Source: Leidyana gryllorum EB-2025a (taxonomy: Eukaryota; Protista; Apicomplexa). From it: DNA of 7,929 nt. Both the position numbers and the translations under genes were made by a program. The notes below the pieces were generated by a model. It was given only the letters and a program-made list of their open reading frames with translations, was not told the DNA's origin and made no database searches. Positions 1-7,929 of the stretch are shown piece after piece. The first letter of the stretch is position 1. Every line of letters starts with the position of its first letter. Where the stretch lies: the NCBI GenBank assembly GCA_048772705.1, contig JBLWGC010000162.1:1-7929 (forward strand), written 5' to 3'.

Positions 1-64
1 ACCAGCGCGGGCCCGGCCCAGTAGATTTCGAGTCTAACCCCCTTAACCACCCGGGCAAGTTGCC
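1..64 (-). pseudogene. tRNA-Ser(CGA), 3' end runs off the window; carries lesions
   Basis: Matches the intact copy at 6947-7028 (GGCAACTTGCCCG..GACTCGAAATCTAC) but has A14>G and a 1-nt insertion in the anticodon stem. Confidence 0.8.
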
Positions 65-125
65 AACGGTAGAACTCGGCATGCCGCAGGCAGTGGCTTC
101 ACATACGGTTCAGCAGCTTGACTCG

Positions 126-198
126 GACCGCTCGCGCTGTCCGAACCCGCGGTCTCGCCATTGAAAGTCTTGCGCTCTACCGACGGAGCTGGCGCGGC
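126..198 (-). pseudogene. tRNA-Lys-derived pseudogene (loop now reads TTC)
   Basis: 5' half GTCGGTAGAGCGCAAGACTTT matches Lys at 7837-7910; anticodon, T and acceptor stems are disrupted. Confidence 0.8.
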
Positions 199-294
199 AG
201 GGAAGTGCGGACCTGGTAACAAGTTCCTTCCGTATTGGTCGCAGAATGTTGGGGCTCGAGTCCATGGCGACTCTTTATCAGAGATTTACTCACT

Positions 295-368
295 TGGTCA
301 CGCCCGGGCTCGAGCCGGGGACCTTGAGCTTATTAGGCTCACGCTCTAACCGACTGAGCTACGCGACC
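295..368 (-). tRNA. tRNA-Ile(AAT), T54>C variant
   Basis: GGTCGCG/CGTGACC acceptor, TGAGC-CTAATAA-GCTCA anticodon arm, T-loop CTCGAGC instead of TTCGAGC. Confidence 0.85.
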
Positions 369-467
369 ACTTCTGCGACGACAGATGGCACCGACCCGGA
401 TGCTGGATCCCGCAGGGCTGAAATCAAACCTCAAAGCCATATAGACACTGGCGGACAGCACCCAATT

Positions 468-509
468 TTCTAAGCTGGAGTCAGACGCGCTACGTTCCGC
501 CATAGGCCC
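468..509 (-). pseudogene. tRNA-Trp(CCA) 5'-half fragment
   Basis: Reverse complement GGGCCTATGGCGGAACGTAGCGCGTCTGACTCCAG; flank 510-547 is homologous to 2580-2617. Confidence 0.75.
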
Positions 510-577
510 AAAATCATCCCCCGCTCCAGACTCATTGCCTTGTGGTCCAACATCTTCGATCGTTCCAAACCATCTTC

Positions 578-649
578 AGGGCACCCGCGGAGTTGAACCA
601 CGGACTTGCTGATCTGCAGTCAGCTGCTCTACCACTGACCTACGTACCC
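578..649 (-). tRNA. tRNA-Cys(GCA), with 2 stem mismatches
   Basis: GCTGA-CTGCAGA-TCAGC anticodon arm; D-stem GGTC/GAGC and a G7:G66 mismatch. Confidence 0.85.
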
Positions 650-745
650 ACAAACTACCCGCCATACTCGCTCAACTCGATTCTGTCTTCTCTTCTGAAG
701 CAAAACGGCCGTTATTGTGCACGAGCTCATACAACAACGGGTCGT

Positions 746-816
746 GCATCTGTGGTCTAGTGGTAGAATGTGTCGTTGCCACCGAGACGACCCAGGTTCG
801 ATTCCCGACAGACGCA
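746..816 (+). pseudogene. tRNA-Gly(GCC), degenerate
   Basis: 5 substitutions versus the intact copy at 2635-2705, four of them breaking stem pairs. Confidence 0.8.
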
Positions 817-959
817 GGAGGCACGCCTCAAACCGCCGTGGCAAATTAACAGAGACGCTGACAACCTTGGTCGCACGAGGCCGGGGCATTCTGACACTGG
901 ATGTAACAACCCCCTGAGATAAGATCGAATGTAAGTTACGCGGTGGCACGGCGGTGATC

Positions 960-1033
960 GCTCCCCCAGCTCAGCTGGTTAGAGCATCGGCCTTATGTGC
1001 CGAAGGTCGAGGGTTCGATCCCCCCGGGGAGCA
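960..1033 (+). tRNA. tRNA-Ile(TAT), intronless, U8>C
   Basis: GCTCCCC/GGGGAGC-A acceptor, TCGGC-CTTATGT-GCCGA anticodon arm, GGTTCGATCC B-box, one T-stem mismatch. Confidence 0.85.
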
Positions 1034-1174
1034 AATCAACCCAATGACAGCCGAACGCGACCGCCGAGTACTTCAGCATTTGACACCTATGAGTGCCCTA
1101 GCCGGGCAGGCCGACCAGGAGGCTGTTTGACCTTAAGGTATCATTCTCCCTCGCTTGGAAGAACGTTGCCAGTG

Positions 1175-1198
1175 GGTGTAGTAGCTCAGTCGGCAGAG
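1175..1198 (+). pseudogene. tRNA-Asn-like 5' fragment (acceptor strand and D arm)
   Basis: GTAGCTCAGTCGGCAGAG is identical to Asn at 5783-5855 and the upstream flank is similar; it is fused to a Ser fragment. Confidence 0.65.
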
Positions 1199-1228
1199 TC
1201 TACCCCATAACCACTCGGGCAACTTGCC
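1196..1228 (-). pseudogene. tRNA-Ser(CGA) 5' fragment
   Basis: GAGTCTACCCCATAACCACTCGGGCAACTTGCC matches the D-arm/acceptor end of the Ser copy at 2779-2860. Confidence 0.75.
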
Positions 1229-1290
1229 ACCTGTCCAACTGGGCATCTTGCGCCCAGTGCCGTCACATACGGTTCAGCAAGCTCGACTCG

Positions 1291-1362
1291 GACTTCTCGC
1301 GCTGCCCGAACCTGCGGTCTCCCATCAAAAGTCTTGCGCTCTACCGACGGACTGGGGGCGGC
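1291..1362 (-). pseudogene. tRNA-Lys(TTT)-derived pseudogene
   Basis: AAAAGTCTTGCGCTCTACCGAC core; the degraded 3' half resembles that of the 126-198 copy. Confidence 0.8.
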
Positions 1363-1462
1363 AACGAAACTCGGACTTAATAACAAATTCCATTCGTATT
1401 GATCGTTGAATCTTGGGCCTTCCTCGGGTACAGGGCGAAGCTGTATCAGAGATGCACTCACT

Positions 1463-1536
1463 TGGTCACGCCCGGGCTCCAACCGCCGACTCAGAACTTA
1501 TTAGGCTCACGCTCTGGCCGCCTGAAACACGCGACC
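1463..1536 (-). pseudogene. tRNA-Ile(AAT) pseudogene
   Basis: Paralog of 295-368 with the same flank; D and T arms are disrupted. Confidence 0.8.
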
Positions 1537-1691
1537 GCTTCAGAGTTGAGGTGAACAGTCACTAGCCGAAGGGTGTTTAGCAAAGCCTTATGATTGGTAT
1601 GAACCGGCCACTCCGACGTTCCTCCACCGAGAAGGGGTACTACCAATTCGCACGGGATTCCTGATGGAAGGCGTAGCCCGTTCCCACTCTC

Positions 1692-1773
1692 GGCTAGGTG
1701 GCCGAGTGGTTAAGGCGGCGGCCTGCTAAGCCGTTGGGTTTCACCCGCGTGAGTTCGAATCTCAACCTTGTCG
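1692..1773 (+). tRNA. tRNA-Ser(GCT), 2 stem mismatches
   Basis: GCGGC-CTGCTAA-GCCGT anticodon arm, long variable arm GGGTTTCACCC, G73; T4:T69 and G49:A65 mismatches. Confidence 0.88.
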
Positions 1774-1968
1774 GTTGCATTTGAGAAAAAGCGCAAGGAT
1801 TTAAGTGAGCTTTCTGTCCCACCCAAATCCAACGCCTACGCTGGGCGCTATATACAGGAGCCACTTAAAATATTTCAGAGGTCAGTAGAGAGACCCGTGT
1901 TGCGTGTGTCCAGTTGAGGAAGCGCTAGTACGGAAAATTCAACAGACTCTTCTGGGATGGGCTGAGCC

Positions 1969-2040
1969 GGTTGCGTCCTGTAGTGGTTAGCACTGGAGAC
2001 TCTGAATCTTCCGACCTGGGTTCGATTCGCGGCGCGACCT
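1969..2040 (+). pseudogene. tRNA-Gln(CTG), D-arm disrupted
   Basis: GGTTGCG/CGCGACC-T acceptor, GGAGA-CTCTGAA-TCTTC anticodon arm; TCCTGT replaces the expected A-box/D-stem start. Confidence 0.8.
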
Positions 2041-2102
2041 TGGAACTGGTCCTCACTACTCCCTGAAACTTCGCCATGTCTTGGGCTGCGGGGACCATCC
2101 GT

Positions 2103-2174
2103 GCAGCAATGGTCTAGTGGTTACGACGTCTGCTTCGCACGCAGAAGTCCCGAGTTCGATCCTCGGTGGCTGTA
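2103..2174 (+). tRNA. tRNA with Val body and CGC (Ala-type) anticodon; probable pseudogene
   Basis: Near-identical to Val(AAC) at 6395-6467 but the loop is TTCGCAC; also C6>A and a 1-nt variable-loop deletion. Confidence 0.8.
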
Positions 2175-2229
2175 GCTCGCAACTTTCAGCGAGAACCGAA
2201 GCAGAGAATCTTAAGCGAAACCACCTGCG

Positions 2230-2301
2230 TTTCGAGACCGGGAATCGAACCCGGGTCTTCCGCGTGACAGGCGGAGACATTAACCACTATACTGACTCGG
2301 A
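2230..2301 (-). pseudogene. tRNA-Asp(GTC), degenerate
   Basis: TCCGC-CTGTCAC-GCGGA arm and T arm are intact; acceptor stem, U8, D-stem and discriminator are mutated versus the other Asp copies. Confidence 0.82.
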
Positions 2302-2392
2302 CGCTCCGAACACGCCGGCCTCCAATCCCAGAAGTCTTTCTATTCCGGCTCACGGACAAAAAACGCGTGGAGCGACGAACCAACAAGACTGC

Positions 2393-2472
2393 GGCAAGAT
2401 GGCTGAGGGGTCTAAGGCGCTGTATTCAAGTCGCAGTTCGAAAGGGCGTGGGTCCAAATCCCACTCTTTTCA
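2393..2472 (+). pseudogene. tRNA-Leu(CAA), degenerate
   Basis: GGCAAGATGG start, loop TTCAAGT, variable arm TTCGAAAGGG, T-loop TCCAAAT (T55>C). Confidence 0.8.
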
Positions 2473-2509
2473 GGTTGAGCCTCACACGGCAAACACAAAA
2501 GAGTCTGAT

Positions 2510-2579
2510 TGAGCCCATAGTGATTCGAAAACGCAACCTTCTGATCTGGAGTCAGACGCGGTACGTCGGCCATAGGCCC
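2510..2579 (-). pseudogene. tRNA-Trp(CCA) pseudogene
   Basis: TCTGA-CTCCAGA-TCAGA arm is intact; D-loop has deletions and the T-stem has lesions. Confidence 0.8.
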
Positions 2580-2634
2580 AAAACCATCTCCCGCTCCAGA
2601 CTCATTACTTGGTGGTCAGGAAAGGAGGTCTCAC

Positions 2635-2705
2635 GCATCTGTGGTCTAGTGGTAGAATGTCTCGTTGCCATCGAGACGACCCGGGTTCGATTCCCGGCAG
2701 ATGCA
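2635..2705 (+). tRNA. tRNA-Gly(GCC), intact
   Basis: GCATCTG/CAGATGC-A, TCTCG-TTGCCAT-CGAGA, CCGGG-TTCGATT-CCCGG. Confidence 0.95.
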
Positions 2706-2778
2706 GAGGAGATAATCCATGGTTGATTTTGCCAATGTTTCATGCCTCATTTAGTGTCTGACCTTCAATCACATCACA

Positions 2779-2860
2779 CGACAACTCTTGGATTTGAACC
2801 AGCGCGGGCCAGGCCCAGTAGATTTCGAGTCTACCCCCTTAACCACTCGGGCAAGTTGCC
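2779..2860 (-). tRNA. tRNA-Ser(CGA), two T-stem mismatches
   Basis: Identical to 6947-7028 except the 3' T-stem strand (CCAAG versus CCAGC). Confidence 0.87.
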
Positions 2861-3002
2861 AACTGTCCAACTCGGTATGCCGCAGACAGTGGCTACGTAT
2901 ACGGCTCTCGCGCATGACAAGCACGCTGCGCGATATGGTCTTGGCCCTTCAAAGGTCGTAACTTCGAGTATTTAAATACGCTGCGTGCACCCGTACGAAG
3001 TT

Positions 3003-3075
3003 TGGACAACCTGGGTATCGATCCCAGTACCTCTCGCATGCGAAGCGAGCGCTCTACCATTTGAGCTAGCCGCCC
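3003..3075 (-). tRNA. tRNA-Ala(CGC)
   Basis: G3:U70 pair, CTCGC-TTCGCAT-GCGAG arm, eukaryotic Ala T-loop ATCGATA, A73. Confidence 0.93.
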
Positions 3076-3171
3076 GTTGCGCAGACCCGCTAGCGTTTAG
3101 GGGCCCTGACATACTATGAGGTGTTTCGAAGAGGGTACGGCTCTCGGCCAAAGCTGCGGCTCAGTGAATTG

Positions 3172-3244
3172 TCCACTGTAGTCTAAGTGGCTAGGATATG
3201 CGGCTCTCACCCGCACGATCCGGGTTCAAGTCCCGGCAGTGGAA
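3172..3244 (+). tRNA. tRNA-Glu(CTC), intact
   Basis: TCCACTG/CAGTGGA-A, TGCGG-CTCTCAC-CCGCA, CCGGG-TTCAAGT-CCCGG. Confidence 0.95.
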
Positions 3245-3347
3245 GTCATTGAAGTACTGGATCAAAGTGCTCCGGTTCGATTCCCGCTTTGATGTATCGA
3301 TAGAGAACGGCTGTCACCACGTACAAAATGCAACAGCGTTGTTTTTT

Positions 3348-3418
3348 GCATCTGTGGTCTAGTGGTATAGTGTCTCGTTGCGATCGAGACGACCCGGGTT
3401 CGAATTCCCGCAGATGCG
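3348..3418 (+). pseudogene. Gly-body tRNA with GCG anticodon
   Basis: Paralog of 2635-2705 with loop TTGCGAT, a slipped T arm (TTCGAATTCCCG) and G73. Confidence 0.8.
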
Positions 3419-3495
3419 GAGGACACACGGTTGTTTTTACACCATTTCAGGGATTTATGCGTAAGTTGGTGTCTGGCCCCTCCAATCACATCGCA

Positions 3496-3565
3496 CGACA
3501 ACTGCTGGATCTGCCCAGGCCCAGTGGAATTCAAATTTACCCCCCTTTCCCACTCCGGCCTGTCG
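3496..3565 (-). pseudogene. tRNA-Ser pseudogene (loop reads TGA), internal deletion
   Basis: CGACAACTGCTGGAT and CCAGGCCCAGT match the Ser(CGA) copies; the flank CAATCACATCGCA is shared. The right boundary is approximate. Confidence 0.7.
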
Positions 3566-3637
3566 ATTCTGGCGTGAGGCGAGGAGTGGCCGGCCGCGGT
3601 AAGTGCTTATTTTCACCGCCTTCCATGACTACCTAGT

Positions 3638-3710
3638 GCCTCGGTAGCTCAGTTGGGAGAGCGCCAGACTGAAGATCTGGAAGTCCCGTGTTCGATCCAC
3701 GGCCGAGGCA
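3638..3710 (+). tRNA. tRNA-Phe(GAA), intact
   Basis: GCCTCGG/CCGAGGC-A, CCAGA-CTGAAGA-TCTGG, CCGTG-TTCGATC-CACGG, G20. Confidence 0.95.
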
Positions 3711-3902
3711 GAGAGTTTGTGACATTTGGTGTCGTCCCTCGCGCCCGTGCGAGCGTTCTGCCCCTCATCGGATACCTGTTTCAAGAGACACACGCCCCTT
3801 TCACAGTCCGGAAGCTTCGTGCAGCCAGTAGTCTGACGGCCCGCGGTGCTCAGATGGCAAGGCATCTGTCTAGGTCGTGCTGTGGAGTCGGGGGATAGTT
3901 TT

Positions 3903-3972
3903 GGGTCTCTGGCACAACGGTAGCGCGTCTGACTCCAGATCAAAAGGTTGGTGTTCAATCACTCTGGGTTCG
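3903..3972 (+). pseudogene. tRNA-Trp(CCA) pseudogene
   Basis: GGTAGCGCGTCTGACTCCAGATCA core; T-arm deletions and acceptor mismatches. Confidence 0.8.
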
Positions 3973-4013
3973 ATAAGATTCAATCATTTCCGCTTGGCGC
4001 GCGGACAAGACAG

Positions 4014-4094
4014 TGACATGACACGGCATCCGAACTCACGCCCTTTGGAACTGCGTTTTGAATAAAGGGGCTTAAACCACTGGGTCATCTGGCC
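4014..4094 (-). pseudogene. tRNA-Leu(CAA) pseudogene, heavily decayed
   Basis: Reverse complement GGCCAGATGACCCAGTGGTTTAAG..TATTCAAAACGCAGTTCCAAAGGGCGTGAGTTCG resembles 2393-2472. Confidence 0.75.
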
Positions 4095-4188
4095 AGCTCG
4101 CTTTCTGTCCCGCCACCCGAAGCGTTTCCTGCGTGTTGAAGCTAGGGGATAAAAAGGCCGCTGTTTAAGGTGGGGGGGGTCAGCTGCC

Positions 4189-4240
4189 TCCGACATAGTA
4201 CGAGAGTTAGTAGTTCCGCCTGCCACGCGAACGCCCCCCG
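4189..4240 (+). pseudogene. tRNA-Asp-derived remnant (loop reads GCC)
   Basis: TCCGACATAGTA..GTTAGTAGTTCCGCCTGCCACGCG aligns to Asp; it sits 94 nt from a divergent Leu, as in other Leu-Asp pairs. Confidence 0.7.
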
Positions 4241-4293
4241 CAGTGGAGCCAGTTCACATGTCAAGCTATCGCGTTTTGTGTCCTTACTATATG

Positions 4294-4366
4294 GCCGCCC
4301 TAGCTCAGTCGGTGGAGCGCAAGAGTCTTAATCTCTCAGTCGCCAGTTCGAGCCCCGTGGGCGGTG
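4294..4366 (+). pseudogene. tRNA-Lys(CTT), degenerate
   Basis: GCCGCCC/GGGCGGT-G acceptor, loop GTCTTAA, anticodon- and T-stem mismatches; 3' flank shared with Lys(TTT) at 7837-7910. Confidence 0.82.
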
Positions 4367-4499
4367 CGGATGAATGTCTCTGGGGGTAAGAATAAAATAT
4401 TTTGCATGCAAGCACACTAGAGTAACTCCAGTTGGCCCATCAACGCTGTCTGCCAAACGCCATCACGTTGACTATTAGTTTGCAAACCACCTCTCTACT

Positions 4500-4579
4500 T
4501 CCGGTGGGACGGAATCGAACCGCCGACTATCTGATGCCAGCACTACAGTCAGATGCTCTACCAACTGAGCTACCCCCGG
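4500..4579 (-). tRNA. tRNA-Tyr(GTA) with a 7-nt intron (4536-4542)
   Basis: C1:G72, A73, TCTGA-CTGTAG[TGCTGGC]A-TCAGA, GGCGG-TTCGATT-CCGTC; one acceptor mismatch. Confidence 0.9.
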
Positions 4580-4760
4580 CCGTCCAACAGCCTTAGACGA
4601 TCAGTTCCAGGCCGATACAGCACTCCTACGTGCTCTATCAGCTCAAACGAGTAGCTAGAAAGCATATATAGACTAGATCTAAACTCGAGATGGTTCACCG
4701 TTCTACCCGGATTTCAAGGTCTGCACTGACTAACTATTCCCGATCTTGAACTCCAACGGC

Positions 4761-4840
4761 TGACAAGAGTGGGATTCGAACCCACGCCCTTTCGGACTGC
4801 GGCCTTAACACAGCGCCTTAGACCACTCGCCCATCTTGCC
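4761..4840 (-). tRNA. tRNA-Leu(AAG), one D-stem substitution
   Basis: GGCAAGA/TCTTGTC-A, CTGTG-TTAAGGC-CGCAG, variable arm TCCGAAAGGG, GTGGG-TTCGAAT-CCCAC. Confidence 0.9.
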
Positions 4841-4934
4841 GGAGTGTTTTTGGCTCGCCGTTCCACCCGTTTCCTGTCCGTGAAATCTCAAAATGCGAGG
4901 AGTTCTGGGGTTGGAGGCCGGCATCTTTACTAGG
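4841..4934. repeat. Conserved spacer of the divergent Leu-Asp pair (also 2302-2392, 6174-6267, 7248-7326, decayed 4095-4188)
   Basis: Shared motifs CGTTT.CT.TCCGTG.AA..TCAA.ATG and TGGGGTT..AGGCCGG. Confidence 0.9.
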
Positions 4935-5006
4935 TCCGAGATAGTATAGTGATCAGTATTTCCGCCTGTCACGCGGAAGACCCGGGTTCGATTCCCGGTC
5001 TCGGAG
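4935..5006 (+). tRNA. tRNA-Asp(GTC), D-loop GG>GA
   Basis: TCCGAGA/TCTCGGA-G, TCCGC-CTGTCAC-GCGGA, intact T arm. Confidence 0.9.
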
Positions 5007-5189
5007 TAGTTCCAGCCCTCACAACTGGTGCAACTCAGATTTTGTCTCAGCTGGTCTGGACTTCATTCGGGATTGTACGAGACTGTCGTCTGGGTGCGGT
5101 GTATCGGCCTCCAGCCCCGAAGAAGTCGTACGGCCGGGGGTGCTCACTTCCTAAAGCATCTCTATCGGCGGCTTGCACCACCGATAGGC

Positions 5190-5259
5190 GGCTGTTTGGT
5201 CTAGTGGTATGCACTTGTTTCGGGTGGAAGAAGTCCTGGTTTAATATCCAGAACAGCCC
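5190..5259 (+). pseudogene. tRNA-Pro(CGG) pseudogene
   Basis: GGCTGTT/AACAGCC-C acceptor, Pro-type D arm TGGTCTAGTGGTATG, loop TTCGGGT; the T-loop is destroyed. Confidence 0.75.
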
Positions 5260-5360
5260 GTCTGATAGTTGTTGACCCAACACGGCACTCGACCCGTCGC
5301 GGACAGCTAAGACAGGATCTGAGTTGTTGACTCAACAGGCTGCAACCCGGCCATTCGCCC

Positions 5361-5433
5361 AGACGCTACTGGGACTCGAACCCAGAATCCCCGGTTCCGT
5401 AGACCGATGCCATATCCATTAGGCCATAGCGCC
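5361..5433 (-). tRNA. tRNA-Arg(ACG)
   Basis: GGCGCTA/TAGCGTC, D-loop AATGGATA, TCGGT-CTACGGA-ACCGG, CTGGG-TTCGAGT-CCCAG; one D-stem mismatch. Confidence 0.9.
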
Positions 5434-5554
5434 GACTAGCGGAGCCGTCAAATGGAAGTGTGTAGCGATCAAGACAGGACATCGGCAGCTACGGCCGATG
5501 GTGGGTCTGGACAACTTCACCCACATCTCCCATTCGAGACATCGGGGACATACT

Positions 5555-5590
5555 ATCCAAGCCAGGATTCGGGCCTGGGTATGCACGGCC
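5555..5590 (-). pseudogene. tRNA 3'-half remnant, possibly His-like
   Basis: Reverse complement GGC-CGTGC-ATAC-CCAGG-CCCGAAT-CCTGG-CTTGGA shows a perfect 5-bp T-stem with a 7-nt loop; the His identity is a guess from the GGC loop end and 4-nt variable loop. Confidence 0.4.
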
Positions 5591-5593
5591 GGA

Positions 5594-5637
5594 TGCGGGT
5601 GAGAGCCGCATATCCTAGCCACTTAGACTACAGTGGA
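5594..5637 (-). pseudogene. tRNA-Glu(CTC), truncated after the anticodon stem
   Basis: 44 nt identical to the 5' part of 3172-3244, with a conserved upstream flank at 5638-5682. Confidence 0.88.
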
Positions 5638-5782
5638 CAACTCCCTCAGCTGCAGCTTTCGCCGAGAGCCGTACCCTCTTGACAAGACGTGGTCTGTCGG
5701 GTGAACCTACAACAAAGGGGTTGCAGAATCATGTTGTAGAAAGTGGAGGGTGTCTCTAGCAACCTCTGAAACATTGTAGCTG

Positions 5783-5855
5783 GGTCTTGTAGCTCAGTCG
5801 GCAGAGCGTGTGGCTGTTAACCACAAAGTCGCAGGTTCGAAACCTGCCAGGACCG
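5783..5855 (+). tRNA. tRNA-Asn(GTT), intact
   Basis: GGTCTTG/CAGGACC-G, TGTGG-CTGTTAA-CCACA, GCAGG-TTCGAAA-CCTGC. Confidence 0.94.
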
Positions 5856-5960
5856 TTTCAGAGGCACCCCAGACACTGACTGACTGCCCTGCTCTCGCAA
5901 TGGTACCTGTGGTCTGCGACCCTTCAGAGTGACTCCCGCCACGTGTAGCCATACGTACTT

Positions 5961-6033
5961 TGGACGACCTGGGCATCGATCCCAGTACCTCTCGCTTGCT
6001 AAGCGAGCGCTCTACCATTTGAGCTAGTCGCCC
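5961..6033 (-). tRNA. tRNA-Ala(AGC)
   Basis: GGGCGAC/GTCGTCC-A with G3:U70, CTCGC-TTAGCAA-GCGAG, T-loop ATCGATG. Confidence 0.94.
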
Positions 6034-6093
6034 ATCCGCACTACATGGAAGACCTATTGCATCCAGTGGCTGACCGACTGCCCACACAACGGC

Positions 6094-6173
6094 TGTCAAG
6101 AGTGGGATTCGAACCCACGCCCTTTCGGACTGCGGCCTGAACACAGCGCCTTGGACCACTCGGCCATCTTGCC
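6094..6173 (-). tRNA. tRNA-Leu(CAG), one acceptor mismatch
   Basis: CTGTG-TTCAGGC-CGCAG; differs from Leu(AAG) at 4761-4840 at 4 positions including base 34. Confidence 0.9.
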
Positions 6174-6267
6174 GGGATGTTGTTGGCTCGCCGCTCCACG
6201 CGTTTTCTATCCGTGGAATCTCAAGATGGAAGGACTTTTGGGGTTTCAGGCCGGTGTGTTCGGAGCG

Positions 6268-6339
6268 TCCGAGATAGTATAGTGGTTAGTATTTCTGCCT
6301 GTCACGCGGAAGACCCGGATTCGATTCCCGGTCTCGGAG
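6268..6339 (+). tRNA. tRNA-Asp(GTC), G53>A
   Basis: Full cloverleaf; B-box reads GATTCGATTC. Confidence 0.88.
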
Positions 6340-6394
6340 CACAGTTGATCTCGCTTAAGATTGTCTTTTTTGGTGCCCGCTGAAAGTTGCGAGC

Positions 6395-6467
6395 TACAGC
6401 CACCGAGGATCGAACTCGGGACCTTCTGCGTGTTAAGCAGACGTCGTAACCACTAGACCATGGCTGC
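6395..6467 (-). tRNA. tRNA-Val(AAC), intact
   Basis: GCAGCCA/TGGCTGT-A, TCTGC-TTAACAC-GCAGA, CCGAG-TTCGATC-CTCGG. Confidence 0.94.
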
Positions 6468-6529
6468 ATGGATGGTCCCCGCAGCCCAAGAGAAGTGGCG
6501 AAGCTTCAGGGAGTTGAGGACCAGTTCAA

Positions 6530-6599
6530 GGGTCGCGCCGGGATCGAACCCAGGTCGCAAAATCCAAAGTGTCGAGTGCTAACCACCAAGGACGCAACC
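6530..6599 (-). pseudogene. tRNA-Gln pseudogene (loop reads TTG)
   Basis: Inverted paralog of 1969-2040; the anticodon stem is disrupted and there are small deletions. Confidence 0.78.
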
Positions 6600-6755
6600 G
6601 GTTCAGCCCATCCCAGAAGAGTCGGACTAGCGCTTCCTCAACTGGACACATGCAACACGGGTCTTGTATACAGACCCCAGCGTGAAGAATTGGATTCGAG
6701 TCGGGCAAAAACCTCAGTTCAATCATTCAACCAGTTGCGCTCTCCCGAATGCTAC

Positions 6756-6837
6756 CGACAAGGGTGAGATTCGAACTCACGCGGGTGGAACCCAACGGCT
6801 TAGCAGGCCGCCGCCTTAACCACTCGGCCACCTTTCC
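6756..6837 (-). tRNA. tRNA-Ser(GCT), one acceptor mismatch
   Basis: Inverted paralog of 1692-1773 with an intact T arm; A3:G70 mismatch. Confidence 0.9.
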
Positions 6838-6946
6838 GACGACATCTCTTACTCGCTGGCACTTTTTCACAACGGTTTGGGGTCCTAGTCAAGCTTGCTG
6901 AACCGTATGTGACATCACTGGCCGCAAAATGCCGAGTTCGACGGGT

Positions 6947-7028
6947 GGCAACTTGCCCGAGTGGTTAAGGGGGTAGACTCGAAATCTACTGGGCCTGGCC
7001 CGCGCTGGTTCAAATCCAGCAGTTGTCG
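6947..7028 (+). tRNA. tRNA-Ser(CGA), intact
   Basis: GGCAACT/AGTTGTC-G, GTAGA-CTCGAAA-TCTAC, variable arm GGGCCTGGCCC, GCTGG-TTCAAAT-CCAGC. Confidence 0.95.
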
Positions 7029-7092
7029 TGCGATGTGGTGGAAATGATGCAATTCCCAGCATCAAAAACTCATATGGGTCGAGACAGGGAAT

Positions 7093-7164
7093 GTTTCCTT
7101 AGCTTAGGAGCAGACCATTCGCTTTGTAAGCGAAAGGTCGCTGGTTCGATTCCGGCAGGAGGCT
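7093..7164 (+). pseudogene. tRNA-Thr(TGT), D arm degenerate
   Basis: TTCGC-TTTGTAA-GCGAA and GCTGG-TTCGATT-CCGGC are intact; the D-loop GG and D-stem are altered. Confidence 0.82.
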
Positions 7165-7197
7165 TCAGTCATTAGCCTAAACATGGTTGCGATCATC

Positions 7198-7247
7198 CGC
7201 CCGCATTTTCGGACGGCGACTTGCACACAGCACTCGGCCATCTTGCC
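7198..7247 (-). pseudogene. tRNA-Leu(CAA) fragment with internal deletion
   Basis: Reverse complement GGCAAGATGGCCGAGTG^CTGTGTGCAAGTCGCCGTCCGAAA; about 10 nt of the D arm are missing. Confidence 0.75.
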
Positions 7248-7326
7248 GAAGTGTTACCCGTTTCCTGTCCGTGAAAGTTCAAAATGCGAGGAGTTCTGGG
7301 GTTGGAGGCCGGCGTGTTTACTAGCG

Positions 7327-7382
7327 TCCGAGATAGTATAGTGGTCAGTATTTCCGCCTGTCACGCGGAAGACCCGCGTTCG
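7327..7382 (+). pseudogene. tRNA-Asp(GTC), 3' end lost after the T-loop
   Basis: Matches Asp through GACCCGCGTTCG, then diverges. Confidence 0.85.
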
Positions 7383-7703
7383 GGCATCTGTGCGTTACTT
7401 CCCTTCTGAGTTCCAGCGTGTGAACGGCTTCCGTTGCGACTTGTTGTAGTTCGTGTTGGCCTGATGGTCAACTTCCTATCGGGTGGCCAAATTCGACTTG
7501 GTGAAATTTCCAACCGAATTAACATCCATCTGGATACTTCCCTACATATTTGGCACTTATATAGGGGCATGTATAAGATGGTGAAAAGGCATTATTAACG
7601 AACGTAAAGCCCAGAACAGCCCCGTTGCTTGTCGGTTGACCCGACGCTCCATCTCATCTGAAGATGGTACGGCTTCCGTCCAAAGCTGCAGCTGAGGAAG
7701 TTG

Positions 7704-7776
7704 TCCACTGTAGTCTAAGTGGCTAGGATATGCGGCTCTCACCCGCACGCTCCGGGTTCAAGTTCCGGCAGTGGAA
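7704..7776 (+). tRNA. tRNA-Glu(CTC)
   Basis: 2 differences from 3172-3244; the cloverleaf is retained (C61>T gives G:T at 53:61). Confidence 0.92.
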
Positions 7777-7836
7777 ATCCAGCAGAGTGTGCTTGTAGGC
7801 AACGGTTCCATTCCTACTCCCAGAGACATTGATTTG

Positions 7837-7910
7837 CACCGCCCGCGGGGCTCGAACCCGCGAACTGCAAGATTAAAAGTCTTGCGCTCTACCGACTGAG
7901 CTAGGGCGGC
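7837..7910 (-). tRNA. tRNA-Lys(TTT), 1-nt longer variable loop
   Basis: GCCGCCC/GGGCGGT-G, CAAGA-CTTTTAA-TCTTG, GCGGG-TTCGAGC-CCCGC. Confidence 0.9.
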
Positions 7911-7929
7911 AATGAAACTTAGTTTAGAA

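Follow-up and report, generated by a model that had tools for sequence, protein, structure and literature searches.

Scrambled tRNA gene arrays, probably one repeat compartment, in the genome of the gregarine-like apicomplexan Leidyana gryllorum

Why should an apicomplexan carry dozens of tRNA-derived units, crowded together on both strands, in less than 8 kb of DNA? The question is raised by a 7,929-bp contig of Leidyana gryllorum (C162; JBLWGC010000162.1 of assembly GCA_048772705.1), which was analysed at its full length and is called the window here. It is a protein-free tRNA array, and its short open reading frames overlap tRNA units. Mapping of 28 consensus tRNA bodies onto the contig gave exactly 48 units, close to the estimate of an earlier note made from this sequence; ARAGORN called 31 tRNA genes and Rfam (RF00005) 29–30, with a best score of 70.8 bits. 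The 18 amino-acid families counted in that note are the ones with long units. The total is 19, His being present as a 35-nt fragment only, and there is no Met unit. Approximately 18 of the 48 units have two or fewer differences from their consensus, the remainder being mutated, truncated or chimeric, and several ARAGORN labels reflect a mutated anticodon on another body, namely Val for Ala-CGC at 2102, Gly for Arg-GCG at 3347 and Lys for Stop-TTA at 4294. The array does run to both window edges, as had been noted, but these edges are the ends of the contig, since the window is the whole of C162. We consider it fairly probable that the window is a piece of a genome-wide tRNA compartment, amplified at the DNA level, which is the main working tRNA source of the cell, is mostly silent and is largely a tolerated by-product.

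The assembly comprises 15.5 Mb in 237 contigs, and the consensus bodies were built from 113 kb of array DNA sampled from it. A genome-wide tRNA search gave a rough first count of 11,591 candidates. Solid arrays were found at 30 of the 30 top loci and on three of four contigs chosen irrespective of tRNA content, the density of callable genes being about 4 per kb. With decayed units included, the sample holds 6.35 units per kb, and 43% of its DNA is tRNA-derived. A single Asp 25-mer occurs 518 times in the genome, evenly on the two strands (control, 0). Extrapolation from its density in the sample gives an array total of 1.64–1.78 Mb, or 11–12% of the assembly, which implies some 10,000–11,000 units, 6,500–7,000 of them callable by ARAGORN. 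Genome-wide mapping of the array extent, proposed in the earlier note, placed array-type matches on at least 85 of the 237 contigs (a tally over several searches). All 20 amino acids and initiator Met are represented in the sample, and all 28 bodies form cloverleaves, with 16–17 of 17 stem pairs formed in the consensus and with internal A and B boxes. About 30% of the sampled units lie within one change of the consensus and 317 of 666 are at least five positions away from it, a continuum of intact, diverged and dead copies around a conserved consensus, as in a birth-and-death multigene family.

The way in which these arrays grew has left several traces. Each tRNA body is accompanied by one or few flank types; a body thus travels with its own flanks, which points to copying at the DNA level. 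Origin through an RNA intermediate is contradicted by the intron, present in 25 of 25 Tyr units. Position 58, where a reverse-transcription signature was looked for in sampled units, shows no excess of changes, and together with intron retention this is evidence against an RNA intermediate. As the earlier note had stated, the units have no poly-A tails and no encoded CCA, and spacers are homologous between copies: in the window, 1690-2468 has an inverted copy at 6098-6839 (80% over about 790 bp), and 4754-5006 shares 87% identity with 6087-6339. Its proposal of a mosaic, tRNA-only domain, amplified and rearranged at the DNA level, agrees with all of this and also with the length of the shared blocks, whose median drops from about 500 to 230 bp with falling identity. 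CpG decay gave no signal (C to T, 0.198 at CpG versus 0.187 elsewhere).

The arrays have no periodic unit, contain inversions and show graded divergence between copies (75–99% identity). The 663 spacers of the sample fall into 127 adjacency types, 73 of which are recurrent. Blocks end within tRNA bodies less often than expected (23% versus 41%), so that bodies are avoided. The 74 junction classes include 51 with an overlap of 5 bp or less, which we read as likely end joining or template switching, and 16 with an overlap of at least 41 bp, read as likely homologous exchange in shared units. The genome contains two Ku-domain genes. Contig C117 matches the window at 99% over 4754-7043, after which it runs on as 2891-1690 reversed, with the switch lying inside a 128-bp inverted Ser unit; this arrangement is the product that would be expected of inversion between two Ser copies. 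The junction at 7382, which has a 3-nt overlap with the 5′ end of Leu-CAA, is young, because five contigs match the window at 96% up to this point and then part from it.

Within shared blocks, the ratio of body to spacer divergence is 0.76 for young pairs and about half (0.49) for older ones, and divergence falls sharply at tRNA position 1, from 17% to 5.5%. Conservation spans the whole mature tRNA, beyond the A and B boxes. In near-intact copies the change rates are 1.2% in stems, 1.3% at invariant loop sites and 1.5% at variable sites, and pairing is kept in 24 of 81 distinct one-sided stem changes, where the neutral expectation is about a quarter. It appears that the consensus is maintained while single copies drift near-neutrally. 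Of 342 near-intact units, 20 carry an anticodon unfit for the body; among these 20 are seven Val bodies with CGC and three units that read stop codons. Defective variants have been amplified too, among them a form of Pro, present in many copies, whose acceptor stem is broken.

Anticodon switches take several forms. Stop-reading anticodons are carried by Gln and Glu bodies with CTA (L011:774-846; L041:6542-6614) and by a decayed Lys body with TTA (window 4294-4366); the sample also shows TCA on a Trp body and TAC on an Ala body. On one duplicated segment, a His body reading GTA adjoins a Tyr body reading GTG, with one base change each (L011:2214-2287, 2626-2705; L012:365-444, 787-860).

Array genes possess the cloverleaf and the A and B boxes of a canonical RNA polymerase III (Pol III) tRNA gene but in almost all cases lack its oligo-T terminator just downstream. 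Among 317 near-intact genes, a run of four T (T4) lies within 15 nt downstream in 1% and within 30 nt in 7%, similar to upstream. The first T4 is met at a median of about 370 nt downstream, after 1.6 same-strand and 1.3 antisense units on average. A pattern of T-loop plus T4, which misses families with other T-loops, has 103 matches in the genome, mostly from a few array variants. General pairing between leader and trailer was unsupported by a permutation test (p = 0.23), though Asn, Ser, Trp and Arg-ACG pair well. We take these features to mean that the arrays probably supply most of the working tRNAs, through long read-through precursors.

Some related observations concern termination. The array on contig C4 includes a U6 small nuclear RNA gene (L040:1936-2039), which lies between decayed Asn and Pro units, has an A-rich stretch upstream and finishes in T7; because of this ending, oligo-T termination probably exists in this organism. 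5S RNA gave two matches, a lower bound, one of them on array contig C157. T4 runs occur in 42–43% of head-to-head spacers versus 13–23% of the others (copies being non-independent), so that T-rich runs lie upstream of genes and not downstream. A few lone tRNA-like 3′ ends with T runs are found on large contigs, on C104 near 181,200 and 807,100, on C202 near 192,650 and on C230 near 1,088,320; one is Cys-like, one Gln-like and two are others, one possibly tRNA-Sec.

A complete set of 28 bodies with flanks has been copied some 200-fold or more as duplicated or inverted blocks of 0.15–3 kb. If the arrays are a tolerated, mostly silent tRNA source, they would contain most working tRNA genes of the cell. 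Pol III would start at the internal A and B boxes and read past the absent terminators, and RNase P and RNase Z would cut the resulting long precursors. Redundant dosage would let single copies drift almost neutrally, most copies would probably be silent in repeat chromatin, and the amplification would be largely a by-product of location in a duplication-prone compartment. A bolder version goes further and seems to us rather unlikely as a whole: nearly all tRNA genes, together with U6 and 5S, would reside in megabase, ever-reshuffled, terminator-less arrays that give read-through precursors and act also as centromeric or chromosome-end chromatin with retroelement nests, and anticodon-switched tRNAs would need silencing or filtering.

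The organism is likely a gregarine-like apicomplexan. Its cytosolic HSP70, on megabase contig C230, finds its best ordinary-length matches in Gregarina niphandrodes and Protomagalhaensia (77%), and an HSP70 tree, of one gene and sparse sampling, groups it with these two at 92/92. Contig C2 joins arrays to gene-rich DNA: a Pro unit of the array type stands at 2.3 kb, and genes of the HSP70 family follow near 200 kb. From a related species comes a metagenome contig (Ga0116230_10329219; L051:1-1203) that packs six tRNA genes, distributed over both strands and mostly without a nearby T4, into 1.2 kb; its tRNA bodies are 93–99% identical to those of the present genome, its spacers are unalignable and its order is different. 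The related species thus seems to have the same array design with unrelated spacers.

Huge tRNA arrays have been described in Entamoeba, with about 4,500 tRNA genes in 25 distinct tandem arrays that make up more than 10% of the genome; each array holds 1–5 tRNA types in mostly uniform copies without clear pseudogenes, some include 5S RNA, the spacers in E. histolytica and E. dispar contain short tandem repeats, and gene order is often conserved across species (PMC2652664). The present arrays are similar in their thousands of genes, in their share of a parasite genome (about 10% or more in both cases, here by extrapolation), in their mixed isotypes, in spacers unrelated between species and in a suspected structural role. 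Unlike those of Entamoeba, they intermix the whole set, are non-periodic, inverted and diverged to 75–99% identity, about half of their units are clearly mutated or broken, and their order differs in the relative. They appear, then, to match the Entamoeba case in scale and to depart from it both in the tandem unit of 1–5 types and in uniformity.

Tandem tRNA clusters are known in vertebrates, such as the 3.18-kb repeat of Xenopus, as are multicistronic Pol III units in yeasts. These share with the present arrays the amplification of multi-gene DNA and set a precedent for Pol III read-through into a neighbour, yet they are regular repeats or rare exceptions, whereas here a terminator close by is missing from nearly all genes, which often have antisense neighbours. 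Dicistronic tRNA-5S genes are also known (PMC2566860). Bacterial and phage L-arrays, with up to 43 tRNA genes per operon (PMC8421152), are likewise densely packed, near-complete tRNA sets; in contrast, the genes described here are eukaryotic, without encoded CCA, on both strands and in hundreds of copies. Among apicomplexans, tRNA gene counts are 45 in Plasmodium falciparum, 45 in Cryptosporidium parvum, 150 in Toxoplasma, 231 in Gregarina niphandrodes and 14 in Porospora (PMC9250747). By HSP70 the present organism belongs to the same phylum, and it has the standard eukaryotic anticodon set; what differs is the estimated number of ARAGORN-callable copies. For apicomplexans, whose tRNA gene sets are known to be minimal, scrambled arrays that amount to an expansion of about 150-fold come as a surprise. 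A literature search, with most subscription papers outside its reach, found no report of tRNA arrays in gregarines.

Several points weigh against the arrays being the main, near-neutrally drifting tRNA source. The 113-kb sample was drawn around Arg-TCT and Asn genes, its copies are non-independent, and the size estimate would be too high if contigs are redundant and too low if repeats have collapsed. The step between body and spacer divergence could reflect body-limited gene conversion as well as weak long-term selection. Transcription, read-through and silencing of the array genes are all deduced from sequence, and lone terminator-less tRNA genes on large contigs might supply the cell instead.

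The arrays could instead be kept mainly for a structural purpose, with tRNA output secondary: they would form chromatin at centromeres, beside centromeres or at chromosome ends, for instance by providing platforms for TFIIIC and condensin. Matches to reverse transcriptase number 150, mostly on small contigs, and share 14 contigs with array units; array and retroelement stretches alternate across 180 kb of C43, and arrays alternate with retroelement nests on C13, C72, C71, C123 and others as well. This suggests that arrays and retroelements form a shared repeat compartment, possibly pericentromeric. As to chromosome ends, the array-type Pro unit of gene-rich C2 is 2.3 kb away from the contig start, a single unit in a contig-level view, and such a function has been proposed for the Entamoeba arrays (PMC2652664). 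No telomeric repeat was seen at the inspected contig ends, however, and a mainly structural role fits poorly with conservation over the whole mature tRNA instead of the A and B boxes alone. We regard a mainly structural role as unlikely. The earlier note had opposed a tRNA reservoir to a structural domain; the two are not alternatives, the arrays being probably a tRNA source and also lying within the retroelement-rich compartment.

Adaptive dosage is also improbable in our view. Here thousands of active copies would have been selected to supply a very large one-nucleus cell with a small genome, as in the amplification of oocyte tRNA and ribosomal DNA. It would account for the roughly 30% of sampled units that lie near the consensus and for the conservation of bodies relative to spacers, and gregarine trophozoites can be macroscopic (PMC9250747, on Porospora). 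Yet that same Porospora has 14 annotated tRNA genes (PMC9250747), and selection on thousands of copies is difficult to reconcile with recent mutations that are unfiltered by site class, with the amplification of defective variants such as the Pro body above, with wrong anticodons among near-intact units and with only two 5S genes, even as a lower bound.

It is very unlikely that the scrambled order arose from mosaic assembly or from mixed strains and hides an array that is in truth smaller and more regular. The many short contigs are what such an artefact would give, as are the blocks at 98–100% identity that C117 and C162 have in different order, and no sequencing run contained more than 7% of the sampled words. 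Against this, graded copy divergence, recurrent adjacencies and the independent metagenome contig of the same design argue that the arrangement is real, single junctions such as that at 7382 being less secure; moreover, two Ku-domain genes each occur once in the genome, so that its gene-rich part is not duplicated. Least credible of all are tRNA-derived short interspersed elements or retroposed pseudogenes, which would suit the many decayed copies and the nearby retroelements but are at odds with co-duplicated flanks, kept introns, absent tails and the involvement of all 28 bodies.

With the tolerated, DNA-level compartment as the preferred reading, the arrays offer a second independent case, beside Entamoeba, for asking what huge tRNA arrays are for, with a birth-and-death mode in place of uniform tandem units. 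With them one could test for Pol III transcription in the absence of nearby terminators, ask how a cell handles anticodon-switched or suppressor-type copies by the hundred, and see whether centromeres or chromosome ends are marked by tRNA arrays. Short-read assemblies of other gregarines may have collapsed comparable arrays.

Table 1. Units and segments of the window (contig C162)
Feature	Positions	Strand	Basis or remark
Whole contig C162	1-7929		48 units; one piece of an estimated 1.6–1.8 Mb compartment
Ser(NGA) cut off at contig end 1-64; decayed Lys 127-198; intact Ile-AAT 295-368	1-373	-	Consensus mapping; 79% copy at 1196-1541
Trp fragment 459-509, then Cys-GCA 579-649	459-649	-	ARAGORN and consensus mapping
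Mutated Gly-GCC 746-816; Ile-TAT 960-1033	746-1033	+	Rfam and consensus mapping
Asn 5′ stub (+, 1175-1198) fused with Ser stub (-, 1197-1228); Lys remnant 1324-1362; decayed Ile-AAT 1463-1536	1175-1536		Consensus mapping and junction analysis
Common cassette: Ser-GCT, Gln-CTG, Val body with CGC anticodon, Asp (-), mutated Leu	1690-2472		At least 40 other genome copies, 84–100%
Decayed Trp (-, 2509-2579); perfect Gly-GCC (+, 2635-2705)	2509-2705		Consensus mapping
Ser-CGA unit, inverted partner of 6916-7043	2764-2891	-	C117 swaps neighbourhoods within the shared 128-bp homology
Divergent pair: Ala-CGC (-, 3003-3075), perfect Glu-CTC (+, 3172-3244)	3003-3244		ARAGORN and consensus mapping
Gly body, anticodon shifted, 3348-3417; Ser remnant (-, 3496-3559); Phe-GAA 3638-3710	3348-3710		Consensus mapping
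Four decayed units: Trp (+), Leu (-), Asp (+), Lys body reading TTA with 7 changes	3903-4366		Consensus mapping
Perfect Tyr-GTA, 7-nt intron	4500-4579	-	Consensus mapping
Leu-AAG and Asp-GTC head-to-head	4754-5006		Commonest adjacency of the sample (adjacency count)
Decayed Pro (+, 5190-5259) converging with perfect Arg-ACG (-, 5361-5433)	5190-5433		Consensus mapping
Chimera: Glu positions 1-44 and His positions 36-70	5556-5637	-	Consensus mapping and junction analysis
Perfect Asn-GTT (+); mutated Ala-AGC (-)	5783-6033		Rfam and consensus mapping
Common cassette inverted: Leu-CAG, Asp, Val-AAC, decayed Gln, Ser-GCT	6087-6839		Self-comparison and consensus mapping
Ser-CGA 6947-7028; Thr-TGT 7093-7164	6916-7164	+	ARAGORN and consensus mapping
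Leu remnant; Asp broken in T arm	7207-7382		Five other contigs 96% to 7382, diverging after
Leu-CAA stub and leader; piece 7449-7610 of 600-bp non-tRNA segment; Pro 3′ stub	7383-7703		Junction analysis; no Rfam match
Converging Glu-CTC (+, 7704-7776) and Lys-TTT (-, 7837-7910)	7704-7910		ARAGORN and consensus mapping

Some further features were seen in and around the arrays. The 600-bp non-tRNA segment, which has no Rfam match, is recurrent in the arrays at 94–99% identity (window 7449-7610; L035:1-605; L015:2426-3073). Window 4592-4749 is the sole stretch of at least 40 bp without a homologue in the other sampled contigs, and it holds a TATA-like run. On C43, at 103,000-117,000, partial reverse transcriptase matches at a spacing of about 1,294 bp show that a fragment of a retroelement, lying between stretches of array, has been amplified in tandem. 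Finally, divergent HSP70-family genes, with about 40 matches in the genome, form tandem clusters at C2:201,800-211,200, C104:1,252,900-1,268,900 and C230:1,579,000-1,594,800.

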